64,000 nucleotides of DNA from Asterias rubens (Eukaryota), in NCBI RefSeq assembly GCF_902459465.1, contig NC_047069.1, positions 20,770,001 to 20,834,000 of the forward strand, written 5' to 3'. Each line of letters opens with the position of its first letter. Position 1 is the stretch's first letter. Below, one piece after another: positions 1 to 20,232 of this stretch. The notes under the pieces were generated by a model. It did no database searches. It was not told the origin of the DNA and worked only from the letters and a program-made list of their open reading frames with translations. The translations under genes and the position numbers were made by a program.

Positions 1-680
1 ATGACGTCATTGATCTGAAACTTCACACATATGATCGCTGCCTGACAGTTAACGTGTGTGTAAAATTTGAAGTGATTACAAAAAACTTCACCACACACAT
101 CTTCAAAAAGTCCATTTTGACGAGTTTTCAACCTGCCGCTAGAGGGCGCTGTTGCAATTTGTTACGTCATCAATATTTTTTTTGAACTGCCCACCCTTGC
201 TAGACACTTTCGTCCTTGGAAAGCAACTTCATAACTTTTACCACTTTTGAGTTACAGGGCACTTCCGTTTTTGGCCCATTACGACCGGAAGTAGAGGTCA
301 TGTGAGGTCACGCACACAAAATAAAAGAAAGACCTAATTTATCCCTACATAATCCCGCAAACAGGAACTTACGGTCTCTTTTCGCTGATTTGATATAAAT
401 TTTTAAACATTTTACATAAAACACCTTTAAGATGACGTCACGTGACCAGTGCTGACGTCATCATGACATCCTTGCTTTAAGATCATTATTGCACCATAAC
501 CTTCAATCCCTGAAAGTTTTTTGGGAACTATGCAAAAAATTGCGAGTACTGAATCAGGCAAATAAAAAAAACTTTAACAAAAACAAGAGCTGTTTCGCTG
601 CGCTTTGCTACTAAACAGCTAAAAAAAAATTAACAAAAACAAGAGCTGTTTCGCTGCGCTTCGCTACGAAACAGCTAATA
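1..680. repeat. End of a non-coding interspersed repeat, with a 56-bp tandem duplication
   Basis: No ORF. The unit ttaacaaaaacaagagctgtttcgctgcgct...aaacagctaa occurs at ~574 and ~630. The family cannot be assigned and the element probably starts upstream of the window. Confidence 0.4.
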
Positions 681-2104
681 ATGAAAAACAACAACGAAAA
701 ACAAAGACAATTTTGTTTCCAATTTTTAAACATGCCTGAGCATAATTCAAAACAACTTTTTTTCTTTCTTTTTTCTTAATGTTAAATTTGCATTGGGACA
801 AAAAACATTCAATTTGTTTTTCCAATATACACATATGTGTGTTGGTACTGTATCCTCAGTACTGTGCCCAAGTTCTTTGTAAAAAAAACCACAGGTCTTT
901 ACTGGGGTAGGATTCAAACCCAAGACCCATGCAATTCTAGAGCATATCAAGAATATCAATTTTGGTTTACCCACTTAATGTTTTGCTTGAACTTTATTGG
1001 AGTAATAATTTTACAGGTAAATTATATTGTCTACAATGGCCTTTAACAATTTGTCCAACTTTGTTTTGTAAGTTTAACAACACAATAATACCCATCTCTG
1101 AATGGTTGTAGACTTATTATCGGTTGTGACTATTTAAACACCCTTTTTTTTCTAAGAGTGCAAATTTGTTTGTTTTTAATATGTATCTGATTTAAGTTAT
1201 TGTCATTTTAAATTGATTGTTGTATTTACTGTTATTTCAGAGGTCAGAACTGCTCCCAAGTTGGACTGGCTGTAACCAGGTACTGAGTGAAGTCAGTCAC
1301 ACCATCAGCAACATAGGTTATCTACCAGTAATTGATGCCAATTTTTAGTAGGATTTCTATCTCTTATAATCATAAATCAACTAGAGTAGTGGAGACCCAT
1401 CCTTTACTTGGTACATTCTTGAAAGGTAATAGATCATTACCATGATAATTTGTATTTTTATAATCTTTAGGAAAAGGGTGATTTTTAAGTAAGGAAAATC
1501 AAGATAAGTGAAAGTAATTCATGCAATGTATCATAGGCAATGTGTAATGTACACGTGTGTTACTATTACATGTTTATATGGGATATTGTTAGAAATGCAC
1601 ATGAGCCCATTGGGACAATGCATAGTAATTTAGGGAGAAGTTAATCTAGATTTTTATAAATTATGGTGGCTTTGTAATATCTTTAGTTATTACTGGCAAC
1701 ATTTGGTCATTGGGGTATGTGAATAATAGTTTTGTGTGTGTGAGTTTGTTTGTGCACATTCAAACCGGAGACCTATAACAAAAGAGGACAATAGGGTGAA
1801 AGAGGTAATTTGAACAAAGAAGCAGACTACACAGATAAGAACCAAAATTTAACAATTAAATTTGTTTCACACTTTTGAGCGTACACATGTAGACCTAAAA
1901 GTTTAAGCTGTTAACTTGATTATTATTGGCAGTGACTTTAAGTAGACTTGATATATGTGATAGGGCCACGCGCATCTGACTTTAACTGTTTGTTTTTTCT
2001 AGTGGAATTTATGAATTTCCCCAGATCAAGGTAGTTTATTGTTTACTTAATTACTTGCAGACTAAGTACAGCATACAACTATAAGTGCAAGAAGATCATA
2101 CTGA

Positions 2105-5100
2105 ATGATGGAGTGGGATCAAACCCTGTGTCCCATTTGCAAGAAGCCGGCAGTGGGTGAGGAGCGACCACCAGCAACACTTGGTGTAAAGGGTAGCAAC
2201 GCCATCAACAGGGCAAGCGCAGACAGAAAGGATGTGATCCAAACACGTCCTGGCCAACAGGTACATGAGGGCTATCGCAAGAAGTACTGTAATCCCAAGC
2301 AGATCACCAAGGCACTGAGGGAAAAAGAAGAAGGCCCCTCTACCCAATGTATACCTGTACTTCGATCTACGGAGAGAGAATTCAACTATCAGACGGACTG
2401 CCTTTTCTGTGGAAAGGAAGTGAAGCTCGGGGGCAAGAGAAAAAGTACAGATCTACGATCATTCCCAGTGCGGACTGTTGAATTCAAGGACAAAATCTTG
2501 GACTCATGTGACGAAAGGAAGGATGCCTGGGCAGAAACAGTCAAAGCCCGTGTCCTCCATGTGCACGACCTTCATGCTGCAGATGCGATGTATCACCAGG
2601 TCTGCAGTGTTAACTTCCGCACCAGAAAGCAAATACCCACTGTCCATCAGACCGACAAAACAAAGCCAAAAAAAACAAAAACTTGGTCGACCCAAAGATG
2701 AAACACGAGGGGATGCATTTCTCAGAGTTGCCCATTTCCTTGAGGAAAACGATGATGAGCAGATAACAATCAACGACCTAGTTAGCCTGATGAAAGAGCA
2801 TCTCCAAGAATCAGGGCTTCAAGCATATAGCTACAAACACATGAAGATGAAGCTGGATGAACACTTTGGAGACAAAATCTTGCAAACAGAGGTTAATGGA
2901 AAGCCAAACGTGGTAACATTCCGGAGCACAGCGAAGGTGGTTCTCCAAGATTTCTATGGCCAAGCACAGGCCACTGATCCTGAGAAAGAGAAGATGAGAA
3001 TAATCAAAACAGCAGCTAAGCTGATCAGAGATGACATAAAAAGTGTCAAGACATCACATGAGATGTACCGGGACATGCTGTCAAAGGAGGAAAATCTAAA
3101 TTTCCTGCCAGAAAGCCTAAGGCTGCTGCTTGGAGGATTGTTTGTCGGGAAGAATATGTCCATGAAGATGGCCTCAATTGGGCAAGCAGTTATGCAAGCA
3201 GCCCGACCTCAGGTTCTACTGGCTCCATTGCAGATTGGACTGGGGATCCAAATGCACCATCACTTTGCATCACGCTTTTTGATTGATTCCCTGCACAACC
3301 TTGGCTTTATCTGCTCTTATCAGGAAGTTCAAAGATTTGAACGGAATGCTGTGATGTCACATGGAACAGACATACCTGGCTTCAGTTCGGAGTTTGTCCA
3401 GTATGCTGCAGACAATGTAGACCACATCATCCGTACCCTGGATGGTAACAATACCTTCCATGGTATGGGGATGATTGCTGCCATAACCCCAGCCAGCAAG
3501 ACCAGCAGACCTATCCTCAGGGCACAGGTCACCTCCAGTGATATATCTACAGTGGGAAGAATCCCTATCCATTACCACAAAGAAGAAAGCTGTGGTAAGA
3601 CAACACTGACATACCAGAAGCTGGTGAACATAAAGGCAAATGATCCAACAGCAGACCTTGATCTCCTCTGGAAGACATCCATCATGTTCGCCTCATCAAG
3701 ACCGGCATGGTCTGGACTGATGCAGCTATTGCATCATGGTGACCACCCTGGAAAATCATCGGTGATGTTTCTCCCAATGATCGACATGAATCCCAGTGAT
3801 GTCACGTGCATCTACTCTACACTGAAGTTCGTGTGTGAGCATGCTCGTCGCCATGGTGTTACGCCCATCATCACCTTTGACCAACCACTATGGTGGAAAG
3901 CCCTAATGATCATCGAGAGTTAGCCTACAAGAAGTGTCTTGAATGACATAGTCTTGCGCCTGGGGGGCTTTCATACAGAAATGAGTTTCTTGGGAAGCAT
4001 CGGGCACCTCATGGCTGGATCAGGACTGCAGGAAGTCTTAGAGCTAATCTATGCAGACAACGCGGTGGTACACATGATGACAGGCAAGGCTATTGCACGA
4101 GCAGTACGAGGACATCTCCTTATTGATGCAGCACTGAATGCCTTGATTATGTCAGACGTACTTGGTATGCCACTCCCTCAACCATCTGCAGAGCCACATG
4201 AAGTAGAGGAGACCAATGAGGCAACAGTGCCATTAGATGATGAGCCTACGGCAGACGGAACTGGAAACACTGATCTTGATGAACTTGCTGCCCTCTACAA
4301 GAACCTGATGGAAGGTTCCATGTCTGCAGAGGAGTTCTGCCAAGCTGATGTGTTAACCAGGATCAAGGAGCTCCTCGGGGCCAAAACCAAATCCTTGAAG
4401 TCATTTAGGACTGCCACACTCTGGTTACACTACATGGAGATGGTGGATATACTACGGAAGTTTATCAGAGCAGAGCGCATTGGCAACTGGGCGTTGCACA
4501 TTGAAGCTGTGTCAGAAATGTTGCCCTACCTGGCAGCCTCTGGGCACAACCTCTACACCAAATCAGTCCACCTCTATGTGCAGCGGATGACAAAGCTCAG
4601 GGATGAACATCCAGATGTATACCGGCGATTTGAAGAAGGGTTACATGTTGTCCGAAGAAGTAATCGCCTTTGGGCTGGTCTGTCCGTAGATCTCACCATC
4701 GAACAGGTCCTGATGAGGAGTATGAAGACCAGTGGTGGCCTGACGAGAGGGCGAGGCATGACAGAGCAACAACGTCTCATATGGCTGCTCTCCATGCCTG
4801 CGTGTGCTGATGTCAACAATGCTATGCAGCAGCTCACAGGTGTAAACTACAACACTGGTGAACAAAACAAGGACATGACAAATGCTAGACAAGCACGTGA
4901 CATGAAAGACACACATGCAGTTATCAGCTATCTGCAAGAGAGAACACCCTTCAGCTCAGATCTGAGCTTGCGCAGCATCTCGACAGGGGTGCATGCAACC
5001 AGCACAGTCAATGTGGACTCAGCGAAAACTATTGGAACAGCTATCCTGACCAACATGGATGGACAAATTGCTGCTGACTACACATTCAAGAGAAAGGATC

Positions 5101-6542
5101 AGGCCATCACCTTGGCTGTGAAATCGGCAGTAAAGATTGATGGTGAAGCAGTACAGGTGGATCCCCAGCTGCTGTTCCAGCGACTGACAATTGCTGCAAA
5201 AGCTACAGAGGATCTGGAGTCTGTGTTCAAATATGAGCTGTGCAGTTATCCACCAGCTCTGTTTGATTCCACACTGCTGCTCCAACAGCCACAGAAGCCA
5301 GTGCTAGCAGATGCTATCTGGACACTCCTGACACACGATGCACCAGGAATCACAGGCCAAGTCCACTACGTGTTGGATGGTGGGGCTCTAGTCCAGCGCA
5401 TTCCATGGGCACGTGGCACAACATACAAATGTATCTGCACGCAATACACAGAGTATGTCACAAAGAAGTATGGACTTGCAACAGTCATGTTTGATGGCTA
5501 TGATGGTACATCAACAAAGGACACAACACACCAAAGACGTTCGAGAGGGAATGCTGGAGCAACAGTGACGTTTGATGAAGATATGCAGGTCACAATGAAG
5601 AATGAACCATTCCTGGCAAACAAAACCAACAAGCAGCGCTTCATCAACATGCTCAGTACCAAACTACGGGCACAGAACTGCCAGACATATCATGCTGCAG
5701 GTGACGCTGATCTCCTCATAGTGTAGAAGGCAGTGGATTCTGCTGCCACCACTGATACTGTGCTCATCGGAGATGACACAGATCTGCTCATCCTGCTCAT
5801 CTACCACACCAACCTCAAGTCATGTGACCTTTTCTTCAAACCCGAGCCAAAGAAGAATGTGAAGAAACCGCGTGTCTGGAACATGAAGTACGTAAAGCAG
5901 CAGTTAGGCACCGATGTATCACAGCACATCTTCTTCATACATACTCTCCTGGGATGTGATACTACTTCCCGCTTGTATGGCATTGGCAAGGGAGCTTCCC
6001 TCAACAAATTTAAAACCAGTGCACACTTCCGTGAACAAGCCAATGTGTTTGACAGACAGGCAGCGTCCACGGATGATATTGTACAAGCAGGAGAGAAAGC
6101 AATGGTATGCCTGTACAATGGGAAACCTGGAGAGTCACTCAACGTAGTGCGACACAAGCGGTTCTGTCAGAAGGTCGCCTCCAGCACTTCTCATGTGCAA
6201 CCCCAAAGTCTGCCGCCCACATCAGCAGCAGCGAAACACCACAGCCTTCGTGTCTACTACCAGGTCCAACAGTGGAAGGGCATTGCAGCTGATGAGCTCT
6301 GGCCAGACGACTGGAGTTGGCGGGAAAGCAGTGGAGGACTCGTGCCCGTGCAGACGGACTTGCCACCAGCTCCAAAAGAGCTCCTCAAGATGATCCGCTG
6401 CAACTGCCAGACAGACTGCAGCAGTCTAAAGTGCACCTGTAAGAAGCATGAAATAGAGTGCTCGACTGCATGTGGCAACTGTAGAGGATCGGCCTGTACG
6501 AACTCAACCAAAGATGCTTGTGACAGTGATGATGATGACTAG
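2105..6542 (+). pseudogene. Academ-type (AcademX) transposase: DDE core + XPG/FEN1-like nuclease + C-terminal Cys-rich CXC finger, ~1480 codons with three lesions
   Basis: ORFs 2105-2701, 2478-3923, 3939-5726 and 5733-6542 join into one frame after removing one A from the A8 run at 2668-2675 and reading through in-frame TAGs at 3921-3923 and 5724-5726. Motifs: AADNVD, TFDQPLW, LGGFH, LTIEQVLMR (DDE core); GDADLLIV, GDDTDLL, GCDTTS..YGIGK (XPG/H3TH); CNCQTDCSSLKCTCKKHEIECSTACGNCRGSAC (CXC). The architecture and size match the Academ superfamily. Confidence 0.85.
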
Positions 6543-7202
6543 ACTTTTTGAGGAAGATTGATCAATGTTTCTGTTCAAGTATCGAGTATGGTACTCTGAG
6601 GCTAAGGTAACTACATGCAGTACTATAATAATATGACTTGTACGTCGTACACAATGCATATGCAGTTTGTTTTAACAGCAACCCTAATTTAGATAGTTTT
6701 GGTCATTATTTTCAGTGTATTAAAATAGTTGACATATCCTCAGAATAATGCTTTTTGGTCAGGTTTAGCTATTAAAACAGCTATGATTGGATTCCTCGCC
6801 CCAGAAAATGTATGTCTAGCAATTATAATTAAAGCCCTAAGTCGTTTAGAAGCGGAGATAATTGGAAATGTCTGTTTTATGGCGGCCATTTTGGAAAATG
6901 GCTGCCATTTTTCTTTTTTTGGCCAGGTTTAGCGTAACGAAATGCGTTTCACTTGATTCCTTGTCAGTAAAAATGTATGTTTAGCACTTAAAATCAAAGC
7001 CCTAAGTCATTTAGAAGCGGAGATATTGGGAAATATCGGGTTTATGGCGGCCATTTTGAAAAATGGCCGCCATGACACTTTCCACCACCAGGATTGCTTA
7101 AGAGTTTTGATATGTTATAGAGGACATAATTCTGGGTATGAAACAGTTTACAGACTTTCTGTTGCAATTTGTCCGAGGTCATATCAAATAATGCCTGGAC
7201 TA
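6543..7202 (+). mobile_element. 3' subterminal region and probable right end of the Academ element
   Basis: Duplicated block aaagccctaagtc.tttagaagcggagata...atggcggccattttg at ~6830 and ~6995. The candidate end ...aatgcctggacta at 7202 reads TAGTCCAGGCATT on the minus strand. I found no left partner in the window. Confidence 0.5.
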
Positions 7203-7369
7203 AAGGGCGGGGGGACACAGACACTGTAGCCACCATCATGAAGACCTACCTTAACCTGTACATACTATTTTAAAATGCAATTCACAAAATATTTTCCCCC
7301 TCATTATATTGCAGGAAAGTACATTTGTAATGTGATGTTTGACATTTTTTTATTTTTTGGAGGCGTGGC

Positions 7370-9800
7370 TAGCCAGGGCTAAATGGGGGCTCATTATCCC
7401 CACAGTTTCTGGTTGTTCAAAGCATATTAAACCAGTTCATGTATGCCAGTTAGGGAAAACTAACTACTTTATGATTTACTCGACAAAATTTCATCACTGC
7501 ATGCAAAAGCTGTACATGTAATTACTGTATTTAAAGTAAATTGTTCATTTTTGGCTAAAAATGCACTATTTAACTTCAAAATGGCAGCCATTTTGTAAAC
7601 AGGCACTTTCCATGTTCTTGTGAAATCCTTCCAGATGATAATTTTATGCAACAGGTCAACATTTTTGTATAAAGCTGTTCATTTTAAGGCGTTTCTTATA
7701 TGTTTCTACAAACAAATAGCCGCCATCTTGATTTTTGGCCGCCATCTTGGATTTCTCGCTTGCGAACCTACATTTTTGTGAGAACATTGTTTTTTCTTGG
7801 AAAGGACACCATTCCCTACATTTTGATGTATAGATCTCCCCTTCACCCCTGGGGCTGCAGCATTTTCCTATTTCTAGAGGACTTTTTGCCCTTCCGCCCA
7901 TGGCCTAAAAATGCTACAAAAAAAGGAGACATATTGTGAAAATCTATCAAGAGAAGATTAATAGCATAAAAGCGGAGCGAAACCAGGAAGTGGAAGACCG
8001 TAAGAAAGCGCGTGAGGCCAAGGAACGTCAACTCATTAATCAGACTATATCCAATACAATCAATGCTCTGCAAGTCTGTAGATATATTTTTAAATCTTTT
8101 GCCAAGATCTTTGATATATGACACCAATTTTATACATGTCCCATGTATTTGAAAGTTTTGTGTGCTATACCTATTTATAGCTAAGTTAGCCAAGAAGAGG
8201 ACATTGACCACATAGGGGGGGGGTGGTTGAATGCAAAGAAAATTCCATGACAAGTATAATCATTTGAACATGGTATTGATACAACAATCATGCTTTTATT
8301 TGTAAGAACATAATTGTAGATCATTATCATAGCCCTATACAAGGGAATAAAAGGGTAACCGCGATTTTTTAAACTGCCATTTAAAAGGCCTGGGCCAAAG
8401 GCGAGGGCCTTAATCGCTAGGCCATGTGCTTGGGCCAACAGTGGCCAATGGTTGATTAATTGGCAGGTTATTGGTGTAGGCTGGGATACGTTGGCTTAAT
8501 GTTGGCCCAAAAATGAAATGAACGCAAGTTTGAAAAAAATATGGATGACTGCTTCAAAAAAATCAGTCGATGTCCCAATGCAGTCTTCCAACGATGCAGG
8601 CAAAAGTGAGATTCAAGAAGAAAGTCTAGTGGAAAGACATTCTTGTATCAAAGTAGGTTGATACAAAAGTACCCTATATTATAACATATTGTGTCTGTAG
8701 CATCAGAGTAAACAGAGCTATCTTAAAATTTCAGAGCCACTTCTCTGGCAGCTGAAGATTTCCCAGAGATTGCTGATCTTATTCAACGCAGTTCAACTCT
8801 TTTGGACTGAAGAGCAAAAACAACAACTGGAAAGGTTGATCAGAAGCCACAAATCCATCTTCCCTAAGAATGATGAACTAGGCCGAACCCAATATAAGGC
8901 CAGTGCATTCCAAACATCACCATGGGAGGGTTGGAGGCAACCTTGCTTTTCCTTTGCCAGTTTTGCTACTTCCAGGTATGGTTTCCAAATTATTTAGATT
9001 CGTTCTCTTGTGGTTACTTTTTTGAGGCATATTCTATTAGTTTAGGCACGTATAGTGCAGCCACACCCGCCAGCCCCTAGCACCACTCATTATACTTAGT
9101 CTCTATCCCTGCTGATTCATTCAATGTTTAGTTTTCTTAGTTTCACCAGCTCTTTCTGTTTTCCTGTATAGTACGCTACATGTATCTACGTGTATATTAC
9201 TTAGTTTAAACCTTCCGTAGTCAGCGGAGGGCCCTCTGTATATCCTGCTTGTCATGTGTGGTTTACTTTTGTTGCCTTGTGATTTATTTAAGTAAATTTG
9301 GGTTGCTTAACGTGGTAGTTGTTAACACTCATAGCAACCCAACACTCAACCACTTGGTCCATTACAAAATCATCAGAATGATCAGCAAGTTCAACCAGCC
9401 CAAGCCAGAAACAGATCTGTGATCTACTAGATTCCTACACCACTGGAACAAATAACCTAAAGAAGGACTGCAAAAGCACAAAGTACTTCAAAAAGTTACC
9501 TTGCAGTAGTGAGAGCAAAGATGGCAGAGAAGAAAGAACCAGTCATATAAAACACCAACAAGAGGTCATGGATTTTGAAACCCCCCCCCCTCCATTATTT
9601 TGTTTGCCCCCCCCCCCCCACCTCCCCATTTCAACATTGCAGAGGTATGCTGCAACTGGTCACAACCCGAAAGAACTCAAACAAATACATGGTGGACCAG
9701 GACATGGTCACTGAAGCTCTTGTCATATGACAACCTTGATGACTAGCAAAGGCCCCTTCCCACTACAGATACTGTGACCAATATTGAGGTGATTTGTGTC
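7370..9800 (+). mobile_element. Degraded left part of a second, probably Academ-like element
   Basis: Starts TAGCCAGGGC and has gccgccatcttg / aaaatggcagccattttg subterminal motifs (7580-7750) resembling those at 6880-7070. Broken coding-like patches at 7936-8070, 8790-8880 (FWTEEQKQQLERLIRSHKSIF) and 9360-9760. No partner end found. Confidence 0.3.
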
Positions 9801-12800
9801 ATAAGAGATAGCCACAAAAGGTACAGCTGTGCCAGTAAGGACAAAAAAAAACGTGCTGAATGTTTTTGTTTTAACTATTTTGCAAGCGCTACACATGAAA
9901 TCCTTAACTCCATACACGAATAAGCACACAGAGTATGCCTGTTTCTTCATGCAGTCCTCAAAATTACCAAATGAGTCGCTTCCACATCTTAGTTTTTATG
10001 TACAACACACTACTCATAGAAGTTGATCCACAACTATCACTTTTATCAACAATGTACAGGAAACTGCATTATATAAATGTTATCTTTAAAATCATGCACT
10101 GACTTCCAAGTTTTGGTCATGAGACACAGGGCTGCATGTAAGTGTATACAGTTTGTTTTCTATGTGTATTTGACACGCAAGTTCTTAGCTAAGAATAACA
10201 CTTAACCCAGTAACTTTTCTCAAGTTTCGAGTTAACTTGTCATGCGCCTTTGAACAGCGATGTCTGCAACTGGCGCATTATAATTTAAATTATTATTAAT
10301 TACTATTATTATTATTATTATTAAAACTTCAATCCATGCATAGCCAACCATCACCATGCAAGCCATCTTTTTCGGACTTACATTGTAACATTCATATTTG
10401 TTGAGTGTGTGGCAAATCAGTCTTGTTGCAAATGGACCCAAGATCAGCTGGTAAAAGTAATTTCATGACATGGCAGATGATTAGCAAGAACCAGGCAATA
10501 CTAAGGGTTGCTTAACTAAATTGTACCATATCCTAGTAAATGAAGAAGAAGAAGAAAACAATTCTTAAATCCAGCAAAGTTCCTGATATTGTTAGAGAAA
10601 CACTTCATCGCAGGTGCATTAATATCTTAGACTACAGTTTTGTTTTCCAGGTGTATTTTCCAGGTGCAGGTGTATTAATATCTTAGACTACAGTTTTGTT
10701 TTCCAGTGCGTACAGCAAAACACTCTTCTTGACATGGACATGTTCAAACCAAAAATACATTTGTAACATCATTATGACAAGGACAATAATTTGCAAAATC
10801 ATTACAACTCTTCCGGTTAGGCTAACTCAACTTGTCAAATATTCAGTGATACGAATTTGTTAAACAAATTGAAAAATTGTGCATTCAAGTTAATTTTCGA
10901 AATCAAACTTTATTCAATGCGCTTTTTCATACTTCAAGGGACGTTTTATATTACTTTAATTGAACCCCACACAATAAGAGAGTGTCTGAAGAGTCTGAAG
11001 ATCAGACAGTTGGTTCATAATCATAATAGAATGACTGGCCACTTGACTATGGGAACAGTCAGGAGTAAATATTCTACTCGTACTGTGTGACAGTGTCTAT
11101 TAATGTGCGATGAACTCCAATGCAGGAAATTTTAGGCTGCAGTAAAAACACAAATTGGTAAACACAATAAAACAATACTGCACAACGTGATAAATGACAC
11201 AATGAGGAGGATTCATGAGAAAAAGGCAAATAGTAACTCCTGTCAGGTAGGCTATCCCATACCATGCAACCGTTTCAAATTAACTTCCATTCATTTAAAA
11301 ACTCACAATCATAAAAGATACATCAATCATTGTAGGGTTTTATCTCCGTCAATAAGTGTATTTTTTTGTATGGTATTATTCTTAGGTATTTCTAGTATTG
11401 TCCCGCCCGCCTTCCCCTCTATTTATTTTAATCACTGCATTTCAGGTATTTACTTTGTATTACTTTTGAATGTCTAGTATGCCCGGATACCAATGTAGTG
11501 GGCATTGGCTGCTTATTATATATTCTTGCAGCGTACACCTTACGCTCATTTCTGTTCCTGATTCCGTTACGTTCTGTTCGAGTTTATTTTAGTTCCACAC
11601 CTGTATATTTTCCATAGCCATATCCAGAAGTAACCTTATCTTGTTTTCAACTGTGTTATTTTTGTTAAGCATTTACTTCACTTGTGTAAATATTTTTATG
11701 TAAACCTTCGCAGACTAAACTTTCCTTGTGTAAATATATTCGGCAAGATGCCGTTTTCTTATTTTCCTTAATATAATTATTAATCGTTGTTTTGAGCCAA
11801 TTCCAGCACTCGATCCCCTTTTACGGTTCATAGCCTCTAGAGTATATTTCTCGTGTAATTCATTTTCTTGCTATTGTTTCATTCAGTATTTATTGCTTGG
11901 AATTATTTCTTAGTGTATTCATTTAAATCCCCCGTTGTTTCATGTATATTTATTGTTGGTTTATGTAATGTTTATATCGGAATACTTCAGAATGCCCATG
12001 TTGTTTCTTGTATACTTATCGTTGGTTCATGTAATATTTATACCAGAAAACCGCTTTATGTCCCAGAACACTGCTGTATCATTTCCCATGTGCACGGACG
12101 AAGTATTTGTGTTTCTCCCGGCAATGATGTAAGTTTATTATTATATATTAGTTATTTAACTGTTGTATTTAAACGCCGGATTTGTCTTTTTAGTGTCTTA
12201 ATGTTCAAGTTTCACTCCATATCAGTCCTCAGCCATTGCTTGTTATATTGCTGCATTTCGTCTTGCATTTCAAGTTGTTTTCATTAGACTGTTTAGATTC
12301 ACCTTTGTCTCTCTTCTCTTATTGTTTAATATTATGTGCATTTTCGTGTTATTTAATGAGCCATTTATGTATTTGTTATTTATAGTTTCACCTGTGTAAG
12401 TTTGTACACTGACACTGAAGGTCTCCGCCATCTCCTTTGTACCGTGCATGTAACATAGGGAATGTGAGGAGGTCAGTTATAACTAAACACAGATCTAGTG
12501 ATGGTTCACTCATTGACACTGTTTCAGTTCAGACTATAAACCTTACTTCATGGCCATTGACTGCAAAGACAGAGTAGTAGTAGGGTGGTCACAGCCACTG
12601 CTCTATTAGCGAGGTTTCGGTCGCACACGACTAACGGAACGGCGACGTTTAGTTGCTGTGACGTCATCACTTTTTGTGCAGTTATGACGTTTACTCAATC
12701 GGTCATAGTATTAAAAGTTTTGTGAAGACGTATAGCAGCTCCACTACACGTAAGTGAGAACTTATAGTAAAACTCAGTAATTTAGTCACCATTTCAAGAG

Positions 12801-13154
12801 AAAAACATTATTAATAAGTCATAGAAAGTAGTAGATGATCTCGTCATTCATTTCAGGTGGGATGTATGTTGTGTAGTGTGTGTTTTAGTAGTGTATTTTG
12901 TCATCGAATGGAGGGTGATTTGTGTACTGCGTTTAGGCCTTGCATGCCCTTGCTTAATGGTCGAGTTGTCGTTAGTGCACGTGAACAGTGTGCAGTCAGC
13001 GCGCAGCCTACGATATAATGAGACTATTCAACAGATTTGTTTGCAAGTGAAACCCGTTCACGGGCGTTTTGGAAATTTGCGAGAAAAGACGAGAGTTGAG
13101 CGCTACCCCTGAAAAGGGTCACGGGAAACCCCTAAGGTCACTCGCTGAGCCAAG

Positions 13155-16100
13155 ATGGATTGGTAAGTACAATCATTACATTACACGCTATGAAAACCCC
13201 GTTTTTTCATCTTTTTAAATACATTTTAACGGAAAATTATGCCTTCAAAATTTGCTTCAAAATATGCTCCTTCGTAAATGTACCTCAGAATTTTAAGTGC
13301 TCCTGACTGTTTCGATAAACGGGCTCGAAAACGATGTCGGTATTTGTTGACAATGCAAGTTTTGCGATTGTTTCACACCATTTTCATTTCTACGGGATCA
13401 GGGATTTGTTCTCTTTTTTAAGTTTGAAAATGTCCGTTTTTTCGATTTCGGGCGTATTTACTCTCGAAGTGTGTGACGTCACGTACAATAATTTTACGTG
13501 TGCAACTATACATCGTGCATCACCAATTTCGTGATAAAATCCTAGCCTTGGGCTGCCAATAGAGATGTATTTCATCGTGCATCAACAATTTTGTGGTAAA
13601 ATACTGGGCTTTATTAAACTAAAAAAGAGAAGAAGTGCATCATGCATTACCAATTTCATGATAAAATCCTTGGCTTGAACAAACTGAAAAAGAGATGTAT
13701 TGCATCGTGCATTACCAATTTCGTGATAAAATTCCCAACTTTTTTTAGCAAGTGTGAACAAAATTGCTCTTCCAACCTGATAATATGAATAAATACTCAG
13801 TAAATACTATTATTATTAAATTTTATTTCAATACAATAATGCAGACACTCTACAAAGTACAAGAACAAAAGCCAGTACACTACATTCCGTTCGTCATGGC
13901 CATAATCATGGCAGCTCGTATTTTCTCTGTCGATTTAGTTTTGCAAAATAGTCATAAAACAGGAACGGACAGAACTTGTTCTTTATTCACTCAATTTATT
14001 CTTTAGAACTTACCGGAATGTGCTTATTTTGTTCCCTTGCCTTGAGAGTTGACAAATGTAAACAACAATATACTTAATTTAAATTACTAAGTAACTAAAT
14101 ACTACTTGTGTGTGAAGTGTTTTGTATACAAAGGCAATGGCCATGTAACATGATGGCCATTCCTTCTTTCTGTAGACATTTTAAATCGATTGTCATGTAT
14201 AGTTTTTACATTGTAGATTGTACATGAGAGTGATTGATTCTTTGCATAGTTTTATGCGCAGCTTAGCCAAATAGTTTGCAAACACTTAGTCCACCCTTCC
14301 CCTCTCATCTGTATTTTTTTTTTACATCCGTTGACAATCACAGGCCCAGCAGTCAAGATGACCTCCCCTACTTCAACGTGAAGATTTTGGGAGACTCCCT
14401 GACGAGGTACGTACACCTTGAAAGTCCTTGGTTTTTGGCAGATACTATTACAAAGCCAGGATGCACTGTACGTCGTATGGTTTCGTTGTTGAAAAAGTTA
14501 CATGCAGATCGCAATGGTACTGGACAGAAGCCGCATGTTGTTGTCCTACATGTGGGTACCAACGATCTGGATGAGAGTGTTCTCCACAAAGACCTCCAGA
14601 ACTTTGAGCAGCTGATTTCATTGGCAAAGGAAACGTTTCCATCGGCTAAAATCATAATAAATTCCATCTTGCCACGTTCTGACTTCAAAATCCTCAACGA
14701 GAAGGGCATCATTCTAAATATGCACCTTGCTAAGCTTTGCAAGAAGGTAGGCTGCATATTCATTGATCTAACAGAGAACTTTCCTCCAGAACTTTTCTCT
14801 TGTGATGGACTTCATCTGAATCATTATGGCATTCGAAGGTTGGCGGATGTCATCACTGACGTCACCACATCCCTACTCATCAGAGTAATTCCAGGCTCTC
14901 GTACAAGCTCTACCAATCGGTTCGTTCCAAAAGAACTGCAGCTGCTTGTCAGAAAGAAAAAAAGGAAGAAAGAGCCCATTTCGAAACCCCAATCCTCGCC
15001 CTCATCCGGACCCCCATCTCCATCAACACCGGAAACACAACTCAAAGAGAACGCAACGAGAAAACATCCAAGGCAACCATCAGGAAAAAAGAGAAGTGCT
15101 GCAGTCGACAGTGATGGATTCCAGCAGGTTGGGTGTAAATTCACCTGTCCATCAGTTGACCCCTACTCCCTTCCAGTTTTCCAGCCTATGTGTCTGCCAA
15201 TGAAGGTGATGGTTTACCACCACAAGCTGCATGTGCTGTCGTCATCATGTGTCCGTCCCCCACAACAACCCACGCCATACATTCAGCGTAAAAAAGCTGG
15301 AGTGAAGAAGAGGCGGAGGATGGCCCAGGCAAGGAAGAAGAGGAAAAAGAAAAATCGAAAGGTATTTCACAATGGATTCTTTTAACCAACAATTCACTAT
15401 AAGCTTTTGTACTGTCACGAGTTCAATAGGCCCCCTTACGGATGATGTTTTTTTTTTTTTTTGTAACATTCCTTAAGTGCTGTAACTTTACTGGCACTTT
15501 TCTGACAGTCGTAAACATACATGTACACAATGAATGGGGTTCCATTCTTCTGGAACGTGATAAACAAACCATGATGTCATCAGTACAAGGGTAAAGGCAT
15601 TAGATTTTGAAAAAAATTGAATCCACTGTTGCCTAAATGTTTTTCCAACTATTTCCAACTGCCACCTATTTAAACAAAATTTGAAAAGGAGAACAATTTC
15701 AACATATTTTTGTATGTATGACTTGTAAACAAAGATTTCTTGCACAAAGCTACTTAAAATGAAGATAATTTATTACATTACATACTTATTTTTCCGTTCT
15801 AGGTGCTGGCTGCCTGGCCATGTGGCAAACCTTCATCACTGTCATTCAAGTACAGCAAAGACAATCAAACTCCTACAAAGCTTAGCACTCATACAAAATT
15901 CCTAGAGGTAATAAGGAAGGCCACATGGAAAGGAACTTACGAAGACGAGTTACTTCCATCTAATGCTGCCCTTCGGTTTCACTGGCTCAGGTCCTGTTGG
16001 GTCAGCACAGTGTGGGGTCAAGCTCTAATACCAAACTTCATGTATCCTGATGTTTCAGAGTATGGCTGGAAAGTTTCAAATGAACCTTTTACTTTGGAAT

Positions 16101-16486
16101 TTGTATGGGATACAGAAGAAAACATACAGGTTATCCGCTCAAATGTGAAATTTTTAACAAGAGGTTGCGCATGCTCAAAGAGCTCCTGCCGTACTAAGGT
16201 ATGTGCCTGTAAAAAGGCTAACCGTTCATGTGGGCCAGGGTGTTCCTGTAAGGAATGCCAAAATGTGTTATTTGCTGTGACTAATGCCAATGAAAATGAA
16301 AGTGTGATAAATGTAGAATGTGATGATGTCGATAGTGACAATAGTTCTGTCGTAAGTGACGATAGCAGTTTTGAAGATGATGAAGAATTTTTAAGTACGG
16401 ATGTCAATGATATTCAAAACGATGCAGAAGAGAGACAGTGTGATGACAACACATCCCTCACTGATAATTACACAGAAACAATGTGA
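13155..16486 (+). CDS. Predicted three-exon protein (569 aa): SGNH/GDSL hydrolase + basic linker + Academ-like C-terminal segment with CXC finger and acidic tail
   Basis: Exons 13155-13162 (ATG GAT TG|gtaagt), 14344-15361 (cacag|; AAG|gtattt) and 15803-16486 (ttctag|) have compatible phases (2, then 0), total 1710 nt, no stops. SGNH blocks: ILGDSL, LHVGTNDL, DGLHLN. Downstream: LLPSNAALRFHWLRS and GCACSKSSCRTKVCACKKANRSCGPGCSCKECQN. The splicing is predicted, not observed. Confidence 0.68.
13505..13735. repeat. Four imperfect direct copies of catcgtgcat(c/t)accaattt(c/t)gtgataaaat
   Basis: Seen at ~13511, ~13574, ~13640 and ~13703, inside predicted intron 1 of the SGNH gene. Confidence 0.65.
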
Positions 16487-16729
16487 TGATTTCTTGTGTG
16501 TTCATATATTTCATATTGCAGCTGGTTTTGTTTTCTTCATTTCGGCCAAGTCCTATTGTGCCTCCTGAAAAGAACAAACAAATTGTGTGGTTAGGACATT
16601 ATGTAATATAACTACATGTATACAATTGTTTTACTTTATTTATTAAGGTCAGTAACTTGCCTTTATAGAACAACATTTCGTTCTCCACCGTTTTTAGTAT
16701 CCACCACTTGTAATGTTTTTCTATTTTCT

Positions 16730-17960
16730 AAAGCAGATATTTATGTGTAAAATGTCCAGTTTCTTAAGTGAATGTTTTGGTTGTAGTATTCAATCTAAGT
16801 TTGGACATTTTTGATACGATTGAACTTCTACATTCCACCGCAATGTTAGGTCAGTTCCTTGCCTACATCTGTAATGTTATTTATTTTTATATTGTACTTT
16901 TAGTTTATATTATATATCCAATATTTCATTTTGGGTTTGTGTATTTTATCAATGTTGAAAGCTGCCAAACTGTTTTATATAAACTGCCAAATTTTGTAAA
17001 TGTGAAAGAAGTAAGACAGTTAGTTGTAATAATGTTGATTCTTTATCATGCTAAAGTATGATACATGTATTTACACGGGTCTTTGTACTTAACAATACTT
17101 TCATGTACTATTATATATCCAACAAGTTATACACAAAGGACTTACACATGTACATGTGTTTGCATTTTGGTCTTGTGTATAGTTATCAATACCAACAGCT
17201 GCAAAACTATTTATATAAACTGCAATTTTTTTTAAAAGAAGTAAGACAATTGCAATAATGCTGATTCTTATGCTAAAGTATTGTTTTTAAACGGGTCTTT
17301 GTACTAAAACAATACTTTCGTGTACTATTAGTATTAAACATGTATTATGTATATCCAACAAGTTATACATACAGACCTTAGAGTGTAAATCCACAACTTG
17401 TAAATACTTTTCTACTTTTTACAACAGCTATTTTGTTTAGGTGTAAAGCGTCCAGCTTCTTTAAATAGTGATTGTTTTAGTTTTGGTTGTAGTGTTTAAT
17501 CTAAGTGTGGGCATTTTATATACGATTGAACTGTTACATTCCATCGCTATATTGAACTGGTATAAGTTGTTTGGACAGTTCCTTGCCTACATCTGTCAAT
17601 TAATTTTTTTATATTGTACTATTATTAATATTATTATATTAATGTTTTTAAACGGGTCTTTGTATTGTTTTATTATTAATATTATATATCCAAAAAGTTA
17701 TACACACAGGTATTTTTGTCAATACCGAAAGCTGCCAAACTGTTTATATAAACTGCCATGTTTTAATAAAAAGTAAGACCAAATGTTAATTCTTATTATG
17801 CTAAAGTTGGGTATTTACACAGGTCTTTGTTTTTGTATTAGAACACAAGGGCAATTTATTTCGACTATGCAATATTTTATGACCTTGCAATTTAGATTGA
17901 TATATCAAACAAACAGTATGAAGGAAATCCTAGTGTATGTACTAGTACTTTTTTTTTTTT
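16730..17960. repeat. Diverged AT-rich tandem duplications in the 3' part of the nested element
   Basis: The block gtgtaaa..gtccag.ttct...tacgattgaact..tacattcc occurs at ~16745 and ~17441. The sub-unit gctgc.aaact.tttatataaactgc...aagtaagac occurs at ~16960, ~17198 and ~17730. Confidence 0.65.
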
Positions 17961-20232
17961 TTGCATACATACATTTTTAGTTGTTTTTCTCATTTATTTT
18001 TTAAATGAAGTATTTTATAAGGTGCTATAATTTGTTTACATATTTGTTATGATGTTTACAAGTTCAAACATATATATTGTTGAAATAAATTGTTGTTATA
18101 TCGCTTAAGAAGTTTGACTGTGTTTATTATGACTTATTATTATTAATAGTTACTGCTGAGTGCTGGACTGATGTATAAATGATTGACACACATACCTAAC
18201 TTTTTTAATTTTTTTTTTTACACAACCCCTTCTTCAAAAAAATTGGCTCAAAGTCATTACAAACAAAAATCTTATTTAAAACGATCAGACATTATTAAGC
18301 AGACATACATTATGAAAAATCAGTCACGAATTGTCTGTTTTAAGCATAATTAGAAACATTTTCCATACTCACTTCATTGCGTTTCAAGTTAGTCAAGTGT
18401 CGCGGTTTGTTTACACACAGCAAAGTGTACGAGGCAAATATAATAGTCTGGTTGCTCCATGCCGTCGAATTTTGTGTTGATTCCCGCTTATGCAGTCTGT
18501 TAACCCAACTGCCTTGTGTGCTGTATCGCAGCACGTGATTGGCTGTTTTTGGCTGCAGACGGCTGACCGTGTACGTACGTTGACCAACCATACTTGCGCT
18601 CTGTTGAAATCGAACCCGCAGGCTGAAACTCGTGGTTCGTTGCAGTCCGAGAAACGAGGGTGAACATTTTGACTGCTCCTGACTGTTTCACGGTATTTGA
18701 TGCTCAGAATACATGATTTTTGTAAGAAGAAATGTCTACTCTTTAGATTCGTATATAATTCATGTCTACGGTGGATAGATGAGACAACGTTTGAAGCCTT
18801 TTTACAAGTGCATTTTTTTTTCACGAAAATGCAAATGTTTTTGCTACAAAATCTCACGTAATGTACACCCTACCACTATTATTTTGTTCATGATAAAAAT
18901 CTTGTATATTTTTGTATTTGCATTCCAAATAATTCCAAATTCTACTGAAAACTTTGACAGTTACAAGGTTTTTAAAAAGGGGTCGCCAAGCTCATTAAAT
19001 ATGCACAGCCCAACGGAACGTGCATACGTAAAAAACAAACGGAAGCACTTTTCAGTGGGCTGCGCGCTGACTGTGTGTGTGTGTACTGTGGTCGTACTAA
19101 AACATAACGTTGTCGTTAGGCGTACAACTTAACGTTAGGCGTACATACTGTTCGTACTGTAGCCTATCTATTTCCCCAAATTTGTCATTTGTTGGAACAT
19201 ATGACACTGATTAAATGCAAGATGTTGTACCCTGAAAAAAGGTGTAACTTAAGTTTTCGGCTTTCATTCAAATCAGCATGCATGATCAGGAAGAGGACCC
19301 TCTAAAAAAATTCTCTATTTATTGTTTTTTGTCCTACTGGCCAGCTGCCGCTTTGTTGGACCTGGCAGCCTTCATAGATGGCTTCTGCTGTCTGCCCACA
19401 CTCCCCAACCCCAATACACATTACTAAAGTAAACGTTATACATGAAATTAATATGTATCCTTCCATCTTTAACTTTCAGAATGGCAAACAAATCCGTTCG
19501 ATTTTACCCTGGCCTTGATGTGATTCTCTTGAGGGAGGTCTTGGCAATTTCCAGCGAAGGATTATCAAAAACAGCATAGGAGGGAATCAACAAGATAATA
19601 AATGAAGCCATGAAGACAAAGAATACTTATGTAACACTGAGAGCATGTAAAGATCGCCTTCGTCACCTACAGAATGCTCACCGAAGAAACGAAATGAGTT
19701 CTTTACGAGCGTAAGTATTTTTACATATACAAATTGATCAATATTTAGGCAAATTTCAAACAATCAAACAAATTTAGTTTTTGTACATGTGTCTCAGGAT
19801 TTTAAGCATAGTCTAAATTGACGTCCCATTGAAAAATTACCAAGATGGTGGCATTATGAGAAAGGTCTTATACTCTATTGCAATGCACTGAAGTCACAGA
19901 AGAGGAATAATTAAACACATGAAATAAATAGTAGCCTAATCTTTCTCTTCACTGTGTTACCATTTCAGCTCCGGTACAGACGAGGAGTATGATGAACGGA
20001 GCCAGCTTCTAACAGAACTGGCTGATTTGGATGAGGAGAGGAAACATGAAGATGCCAAGAAAAAGAGTGAGGAGGAAGAAAAAGAAAAGCAGGGCCTAGC
20101 TATTCGAGCAGCAGCGATGGAATCTCTTGTACCTGCAAAGAAGGCACCAGATGGTGACAAAAAAGGTTATTTTCTGACCTGATTTATTTATGTTATTTTA
20201 TTTATTAAATTACATATCCAACAACATATAAG

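Follow-up and report, generated by a model that had tools for sequence, protein, structure and literature searches.

This report concerns a transposable element in a stretch of 64,000 nucleotides (nt) from the starfish Asterias rubens (contig NC_047069.1, here C8, positions 20770001-20834000), hereafter the window. The element occupies window positions 12993-19073 and encloses a spliced open reading frame (ORF) for a predicted protein of 569 amino acids (aa), in which an SGNH hydrolase is joined to a cysteine-rich CXC domain. A sequence-only reading of the window had offered two explanations: the element is a deletion derivative of an Academ lineage that carries an esterase, or an esterase was captured, spliced to a CXC module and kept open as the neighboring transposon genes decayed. 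The first is favored here. The element is best explained as an internally deleted, non-autonomous copy of an A. rubens transposon of about 11.5 kb and of AcademX type, and the fusion ORF as a by-product of the deletion and not an evolved gene. We put the probability of this explanation as a whole at about 0.85.

The parent transposon would comprise a short 5' exon with the ATG, ORF1 (an SGNH esterase of the type found in long interspersed elements, LINEs, followed by a basic C-terminal helix), an intron, and ORF2, a transposase of about 2,026 aa read in the -1 frame and overlapping the last few codons of ORF1. The transposase would be ordered as N-terminal zinc fingers, OTU, DUF6589/DDE core, FEN/XPG-like nuclease, helical module and CXC. 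A single internal deletion of 5,414 bp would have joined the esterase ORF1 to the transposase tail, and the window element would be moved in trans by full-length copies carried by other individuals. The structure of the parent is partly shown and partly drawn from its relatives.

The insertion and its copies

All element coordinates are window positions, and the genome searched comprised 417.6 Mb. The element ends in 16-bp terminal inverted repeats (TIRs) without a mismatch, for which 100 shuffles gave no match, and it is flanked by a TGTG target-site duplication (TSD), as had been proposed. Contigs from two runs, X2 and X4, carry the empty site: they pass from 12992 directly into the right flank, minus one TGTG (two TG units). 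The duplication is thus genuine and does not merely reflect the local TG repeat, and the insertion is still polymorphic. The boundary features are as follows.

12989..12992, no strand: left TSD, TGTG, absent once from the X2 and X4 empty-site contigs
12993..13008, + strand: left TIR, CAGTCAGCGCGCAGCC; an imperfect repeat reaches 13011
16487..19057, + strand: 3' non-coding subterminal region, 99% common to the sister copies
19058..19073, - strand: right TIR, reverse complement of CAGTCAGCGCGCAGCC
19074..19077, no strand: right TSD, TGTG

The TIR occurs seven times genome-wide. Six of these form three pairs on contig C8, so that the pair recurs at two loci besides that of the window; the seventh belongs to a copy cut by the end of contig C98 and reads TAGTCAG. 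Perfect TIRs were confined in this search to copies of the window element's family. The three complete copies are 99-100% identical, have different flanks, and show 4-bp TSDs in every case (TGTG in the window, GTTG and AACT in the two sister copies). The sister copies, c17 and c19, lie on C8 at 17.13 Mb and 19.57 Mb, and the genomic copies differ at one to three positions across the 2.9 kb they have in common. The left end of the element is also joined to other flanks in run X2 and in the ENA contig L067. The window insertion is very young and still segregating. Segmental duplication or an assembly artefact is ruled out by the differing flanks and TSDs, the empty-site contigs, and an independent run of 2016 in which the window-type junction is present.

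Several further observations concern the distribution and the non-coding part of the element. Runs X4 (organism B) and X6 (organism C) stand under two other species labels and contain the element. The X4 copy is almost identical to that of the window and has the same empty site, and the X6 copy is about 1% diverged and of the full-length form; these runs may reflect closely related species, wrong labels or a recent transfer. After position 16843 each of the four runs has 16 letters, TGTTGAACTGATAAAT, that the window copy lacks, which means that the 3' non-coding part of the window copy has undergone a small deletion of its own. At 16700-17800, also 3' non-coding, there are about three diverged repeats with a unit of a few hundred bp (recurring blocks of the form ...ctgccaaactgtttatataaactgcc...aagtaagaca...), which may be candidate subterminal repeats for transposase binding.

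The fused reading frame and its deletion junction

The coding sequence (13155-13162, 14344-15361 and 15803-16486) measures 1,710 nt and has 569 codons with no internal stop. The three exons contribute 8, 1018 and 681 coding nt (stop excluded), and both introns are GT..AG. The parts of the gene are listed below.

13155..13162, + strand: putative coding part of exon 1 (ATG GAT TG), with a phase-2 donor followed by GTAAGT
13163..14343, + strand: putative intron 1
14344..15361, + strand: exon 2, the body of ORF1, supported by Pfam and by 4C1B in sequence and fold
about 14372-14884, + strand: SGNH esterase, within exon 2
about 15275-15358, + strand: Lys/Arg-rich long helix, in exon 2 after a disordered Pro/Ser-rich linker
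15362..15802, + strand: intron 2, 441 nt, GT..AG, phase 0
15803..15868, + strand: first 22 codons of the last ORF1 exon; the -1 frame holds the ATG of the parent transposase at 15820
15868..15869, no strand: deletion junction, with 2-nt microhomology and 5,414 bp of the parent missing
15869..16486, + strand: last 205 transposase codons and stop (helical LLPS..H..R..W module, CXC, acidic tail)
16160-16264, + strand: CXC domain (Pfam TCR)

The three-exon gene proposed earlier holds for the open ORF and for intron 2. This intron is spliced (15361^15803) in RefSeq XP_033631888.1 and XP_033632014.1, which are models on the sister copies, and in run X2 its GT..AG joint has a depth of 44.9 versus 18.6 for the unspliced path. 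An equivalent intron is present in a related family, family 1. Exon 1 and intron 1 come from comparison with L071, a divergent full-length relative, where GCCAAGATGGnnTG/GTrAGT occurs at the same distance from the TIR. The exon ends in GCCAAGATGGATTG/GTAAGT in the window element and in GCCAAGATGGCGTG/GTGAGT in L071; the element positions are 163 and 162, respectively, and both exons have 8 coding nt and end in phase 2. In all families there is no ATG ahead of the GDS block, and a polypyrimidine-AG acceptor lies directly upstream of the SGNH coding part. Judged from these comparisons, exon 1 is likely. Neither RefSeq model of the sister copies includes it.

The junction itself is revealed by comparison of the copies. 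The interval 12993-15868 is common to all three, and they diverge after it. The window copy continues at 15869 with the C-terminus of the transposase (TPTKLS...), while in c17 and c19 the next 277 and 385 bp encode the transposase N-terminus, which is rich in zinc fingers and in the other frame, before these copies rejoin the window sequence at 16201 and 16657. The deletion junctions of the copies show 2-4 nt of microhomology. Each copy has sequence missing from the others, and the deletions are therefore independent. A fourth variant, in X1 and X4, passes from 15868 to 16673 with 530 nt between, and the window-type junction is found independently in X1 (record 5). Internal deletions of this type are typical of interrupted gap repair after excision.

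A search for longer copies, with transposase between the SGNH and CXC parts, had been suggested, and longer copies exist. Record 13 of X2 has 5,414 nt between 15868 and 15869, records 27 and 28 of X6 have the same arrangement, and relatives of full length are known from starfish, from amphioxus and from metagenome contigs. Contig L067 supplies the first 603 nt of the missing part, which encode a 217-aa transposase N-terminus starting from the ATG at 15820 (MWQTF...); this fragment is homologous to the N-termini of many of the same long transposases that match exon 3. From that ATG to the stop at 16484-16486 the parent would measure 49 + 5,414 + 615 = 6,078 nt. Since this equals 3 x 2,026 codons, it fits an uninterrupted parent transposase gene, and relatives of 1,960-2,049 aa agree with it in length. 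No match above 47% to residues 153-217 of the parent transposase was found in the reference genome, so the reference assembly lacks an autonomous copy of the window family.

The frame of the fusion follows from the length of the deletion. In the sister copies, in L067 and in the two RefSeq models, ORF1 ends after intron 2 as ..KDNQPLQG*, with the transposase in the -1 frame. The window deletion starts 12 nt before this stop, and because 5,414 is of the form 3n+2, the transposase tail falls into the ORF1 frame and gives the 569-aa ORF. The protein consists of ORF1 without its four final residues, followed by the C-terminal 205 residues of ORF2. The deletion covers the ORF1 stop, the frameshift motif discussed below and the zinc fingers; the OTU domain, DDE core and nuclease are predicted to have lain within it as well. 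In the window copy, translation from the transposase ATG at 15820 would meet a stop at 15883-15885, after 21 codons. When the transposases of relatives are compared with the window by tblastn, only their last 205 residues are found, with nothing else at an expect value (E) below 1e-5; the window copy is thus non-autonomous.

Internal deletions in this group retain the 5'-most and the 3'-most coding parts. A derivative of family 1, at C1:13909800-13914097 and C17:8070665-8074962, likewise retains the SGNH ORF and the C-terminal module of the transposase, out of frame with each other. The two loci of this derivative are 99.8% identical across 4.1 kb, flanks included. The situation resembles that of Ds from Ac and of deleted P elements such as KP: the ends and subterminal regions are kept, the middle is lost with 2-4-nt microhomology, independent deletions of one parent coexist, and movement depends on the transposase of the parent. 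The difference is that here the deletion fuses an accessory ORF1 to the transposase tail in frame, and is no simple truncation.

The esterase, the transposase and the superfamily

That the esterase and the CXC module are parts of one transposon is evident from the relatives. From residue 22-23 onward, exon 3 is 44-63% identical to the C-terminal ends of long ORFs in the same genome, two of which reach 2,010 aa, and exon-3 residues 23-227 are 35-60% identical to the extreme C-termini of about 30 transposases of 1,640-2,213 aa. At the same loci, about 6 kb upstream of the C-terminal matches, the SGNH exon is 31% identical to a 396-aa ORF. The transposase is immediately preceded by an SGNH gene in several A. 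rubens families, in Acanthaster planci (L068), in Branchiostoma lanceolatum (L069) and in two ENA contigs, and the arrangement holds in at least seven full-length relatives. The idea of an esterase-bearing Academ lineage is thereby borne out, with one correction: the esterase is a separate upstream ORF1, not the N-terminal domain of one annotated protein. L071 is complete-looking at 10.3 kb and has the termini CAGTCAGTCCGCA. The related families share CAGTCAG termini; the earlier suggestion that the CAGTC end of the window element echoes a TAGTC end elsewhere in the window is weakly borne out, by these termini and by TAGTCAG in the one partial copy. TIRs of family 1 were not found in the family-1 DNA searched.

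Exon 2 matches Pfam Lipase_GDSL_2 (PF13472) with 47.6 bits (cut-off 32.9), and the SGNH blocks noted earlier (GDS, G, GTND and DGLH) all align to the LINE esterase 4C1B. G39, G71-T72-N73, D154 and H157 are invariant among 40 homologues. The top PDB sequence match is 4C1B (E 1.4e-12), followed by platelet-activating factor acetylhydrolases at 1e-5 and weaker. The structure model of exon 2 has a pLDDT (predicted local distance difference test) above 90 for residues 10-180 and a confident long basic helix at residues 311-338; its first fold match is again 4C1B (Foldseek 6.7e-10, 29-30% identity), with other SGNH esterases next. In the library of representatives that was searched, 1,464 esterase relatives were found at E up to 1e-3. 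With all blocks present, the ORF1 product is a predicted SGNH hydrolase, and by the ranking of both sequence and fold it is predicted to be nearer the esterases of retrotransposon ORF1 proteins than cellular SGNH enzymes.

4C1B is the esterase domain of the ORF1 protein of the zebrafish LINE ZfL2-1 (PMC3905857), and such esterases have been described in CR1, L2, RTEX, Penelope/Athena and some long terminal repeat (LTR) elements (PMC3905857, PMC5408684). An esterase in a DNA transposon is not described in either of these papers, and a literature search that combined SGNH or esterase with DNA transposon or Academ returned nothing relevant, the original description of AcademH/AcademX being outside its scope. 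The difference from the LINEs is that the esterase is here carried by a class II cut-and-paste element, which has no RNA intermediate in need of packaging. Moreover, the window ORF1 shows no coiled coil, PHD finger or zinc knuckle, it begins with the esterase, and its gene is spliced. The ZfL2-1 esterase has weak activity and binds acidic phospholipids. By analogy, the ORF1 protein may work at membranes, or it may deacylate a host factor. The possibility that the SGNH exon is a separate LINE fragment is ruled out: every copy has it enclosed by the TIRs, and in all relatives the transposase follows it directly.

Other SGNH sequences are scattered in the genome. A cluster of paralogues of 43-48% identity is located at C4:7.69-7.72 Mb (L042, L043, L048). 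L042 and L043 start with a related terminus, CAGTCAGAGCGCA, and about 150 bp of their subterminal sequence is common with the window element; they have no exon-1 ATG. At least 12 loci (e.g., C20:3417482-3417613 and C16:12301869-12302000) have ORFs of 66-79 aa that match only SGNH residues 1-42, with about 62% identity, the match reaching residue 44 in one case. These look like a repeat family that contains the start of the esterase exon.

A database search with the transposase of one relative returned 46 proteins of about 950-2,200 aa, most with DUF6589 and some with OTU or CXC. Their hosts are starfish, sea urchins, crinoids, a brittle star, a sea cucumber, amphioxus and an annelid, and the sea urchins include Strongylocentrotus purpuratus, Lytechinus variegatus and Diadema antillarum. 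The core of the relatives' transposase, which is absent from the window copy, matches Pfam DUF6589 (3.9e-11). In the literature search DUF6589 was not discussed as a transposase. The family-1 transposase at L061:6102-9998 has in addition a Pfam OTU cysteine protease (2.9e-5, residues 598-740) upstream of the DUF6589 core.

An AlphaFold2 model of the last 758 aa of a relative, made from an alignment of 35 sequences, has a pLDDT of 80.5 and matches XRN1/2, T5 FEN, FEN1, EXO1 and Rad2 with a probability of about 1.0. By this model the transposase of the relatives carries a predicted nuclease of the FEN/XPG superfamily. The conserved motifs LFDQ..K..ER.RRD, EESDTQ, S.DRD and GCDF match the XPG-N and XPG-I signatures. 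The Pfam XPG profile found no match in the relatives even at E up to 10, and a sequence search of the PDB for the nuclease gave a weak EXO1 match only (0.58).

The CXC finger noted earlier is confirmed. Exon 3 matches Pfam TCR/CXC (PF03638) at residues 120-154 with 27.0 bits (cut-off 23.5), the nine cysteines are nearly invariant in the transposase family, and the family profile matches the CXC DNA-binding domain of LIN54 (E 3.9e-6). The C-terminal module retained in the window is the best-conserved C-terminal part of the transposase. Its CXC domain has the tesmin/TSO1 (LIN54) spacing C-x-C-x4-C-x4-C-x-C-x6-C-x3-C-x-C-x2-C (PF03638; 5FD3), but it is present as a single copy at the end of a transposase, where DNA binding is predicted, and not as the tandem pair of a transcription factor.

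AcademX elements (Academ superfamily; Kojima 2020, as cited in PMC10045372) have 3-4-bp TSDs and encode a nuclease. The window element has the TIRs and the 4-bp TSDs, and a nuclease joined to the transposase is found in its full-length relatives and is deleted from the window copy. The TSDs, the nuclease and the architecture together give the AcademX pattern, and the assignment is well supported, not proven. Shared with AcademX are the TIRs, the short TSDs (here 4 bp), the very long transposase, the C-terminal XPG/FEN nuclease, and homologues in marine invertebrates and echinoderms. What differs is the SGNH ORF1 with its basic tail, the OTU domain inside the transposase and the terminal CXC, none of which was found in the literature search; the window copy itself also lacks the transposase core. 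Academ elements have been reported from sea urchins.

It could be argued instead that the family is not Academ, and that its 4-bp TSDs and FEN-like nuclease are merely features in common with a different DDE superfamily, perhaps one without a name, to which it belongs. DUF6589 is the sole Pfam match in the core, neither XPG_N nor XPG_I is matched as a profile, and XRN1 and XRN2 precede FEN1 and Rad2 among the fold matches. We consider this unlikely, as the nuclease motifs carry the XPG-N and XPG-I signatures and the 4-bp TSD, the very long single transposase, the C-terminal XPG/FEN nuclease and the sea-urchin homologues fit AcademX as reported in PMC10045372. A broader proposal, which we hold as more certain than the recoding proposal below, is that a LINE-type SGNH esterase has long been an integral component, as ORF1, of an AcademX lineage spanning the deuterostomes.

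The window holds a second element of this kind. At 2478-6542 (+ strand) there are three consecutive ORFs of 481, 595 and 269 aa without a Pfam match, which align weakly to the family-1 transposase (DDE region E 3.5e-4, C-terminus E 2e-6) and contain GDDTDLL (XPG-I-like), LPPTS..H..R and CXC. They represent a distant and broken Academ-like element, which is probably what the sequence-only reading called the Academ C-terminus. An inverted-repeat scan of window 1-12992 gave nothing useful for this remnant.

A possible role for the fusion, and the ORF1/ORF2 overlap of the relatives

Several points weigh against explaining the window ORF by deletion from a parent as reconstructed here. The missing 5.4 kb is known from its length, the first 603 nt in L067, and homologues alone. 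The superfamily name rests on TSD length, nuclease fold, architecture and DUF6589. Of the two splice junctions that had been predicted, that of intron 2 has a short side of 26 letters in X2, whose library type is not on record, and that of intron 1 (13162^14344), or any other trace of spliced exon 1, is in none of the runs, the contigs of all four being unspliced at intron 1. Finally, P0063, a 425-aa protein from ENA contigs of another family, is a second in-frame fusion of SGNH to the C-terminal module, and leaves some room for such fusions being tolerated or useful.

One could suppose that the fusion arose by accident but regulates the family in trans, its C-terminal or CXC module competing for DNA or for partner proteins. 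Truncated transposases that act as repressors exist, e.g., KP of the P element. No other C-terminal part of the transposase is as well conserved as the retained module, whose tesmin/LIN54-type CXC is a known DNA-binding fold; the 5' exon and its upstream surroundings are intact, and the intron-2 joint together with the RefSeq models on the sister copies suggests that the family is transcribed. Against such a role, the N-terminal zinc fingers, which are likelier to bind the TIRs, are absent from the window copy and in the other frame in c17 and c19, and the fusion is a single recent insertion. By analogy with KP it might still regulate, but we regard this as quite improbable.

That the SGNH and CXC ORF is a real, selected chimeric gene, a captured or domesticated esterase spliced onto a CXC DNA-binding module, is very improbable: the ORF is intact, its catalytic blocks are complete, its splice sites are canonical and P0063 offers a parallel, but the fusion is limited to one polymorphic insertion, both halves are ordinary parts of one transposon and meet at a deletion breakpoint with microhomology, a like deletion in the family-1 derivative is out of frame, and the 569-aa protein is absent among 5.8 billion database proteins. 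The related claim that the esterase was kept open amid decay is not borne out: one 5,414-bp deletion explains the fusion, and with at most 3 differing bases in 2.9 kb the copies have had no time for decay or selection, so that neither openness nor dN/dS is informative. The window locus is ordinary in kind, a deletion derivative whose gene is an accident.

The full-length relatives have a further feature, an overlap of ORF1 and ORF2. In seven families the ORF1 stop lies within a conserved ..GC[A/T]GGGGT[A/G]A. There ORF1 terminates in ..L(Q/L)G*, and the -1 frame, that of ORF2, encodes ..AGV(K/N/R). The site is as follows.

L067:3496-3575: ORF1/ORF2 overlap; also in the sister copies (C8:17.13 and C8:19.57 Mb), L041, L044, L063, L068, L070 and L071

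In family 1 the ORF2 frame opens just four codons ahead of the motif, and its first ATG is at residue 103, past a conserved zinc finger. In five of the seven families the motif is followed by a hairpin, which starts 11-12 nt past the run of G and 8-9 nt past the stop. Its stem is AAGGGGG/CCCCCUU, and in Acanthaster AAGGAGG/CCUCCUU, a synonymous compensating pair. The hairpin comes from single-sequence folding with modest z-scores (-0.25 to -2.3), and for five families RNAalifold yielded no consensus fold that convinces (-3.5 kcal/mol, without compensatory pairs). The conserved TTGCAGGGGTRA is unlikely to serve the transposase as an alternative 3' splice site, as neither known donor (phase 2 or phase 0) gives the frame. 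Since one family has GCTGGGG, with no AG, a 3' splice site also fails to explain the motif. The window copy has lost the site to its deletion.

A tentative proposal, on balance doubtful, is that the transposase may arise only within an ORF1-ORF2 fusion, through -1 recoding at the conserved G GGG UAA/UGA, which the hairpin follows. A P-site Gly-tRNA that slipped -1 on G GGG beside the stop would yield this fusion. The arrangement in the relatives recalls OrfA-OrfAB of IS3/IS1 and retroviral Gag/Gag-Pol in its short upstream ORF, its long catalytic ORF in the -1 frame, and a conserved slippery run by the stop with a hairpin downstream. It differs in that the candidate motif needs slippage of a single tRNA at a stop, versus the canonical X XXY YYZ. 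The conserved overlap is in any case a testable candidate recoding signal. If the proposal is true, it would be the first frameshift of the Gag-Pol or IS3 kind reported in a eukaryotic cut-and-paste transposon, and the 569-aa ORF of the window would be a miniature of the natural ORF1-ORF2 fusion protein.

The general significance lies with the family. A large echinoderm DNA transposon has been caught active, with near-identical copies, a polymorphic insertion and at least four independent deletion variants, and with an autonomous parent that is present in some individuals and absent from the reference genome. In starfish and amphioxus, the esterase of LINE, Penelope and some LTR elements is also a conserved ORF1 within a cut-and-paste lineage. 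It is therefore unlikely that its role depends on the packaging of an RNA intermediate, which bears on the open question of what transposon esterases do. One accessory module would then serve class I and class II elements.

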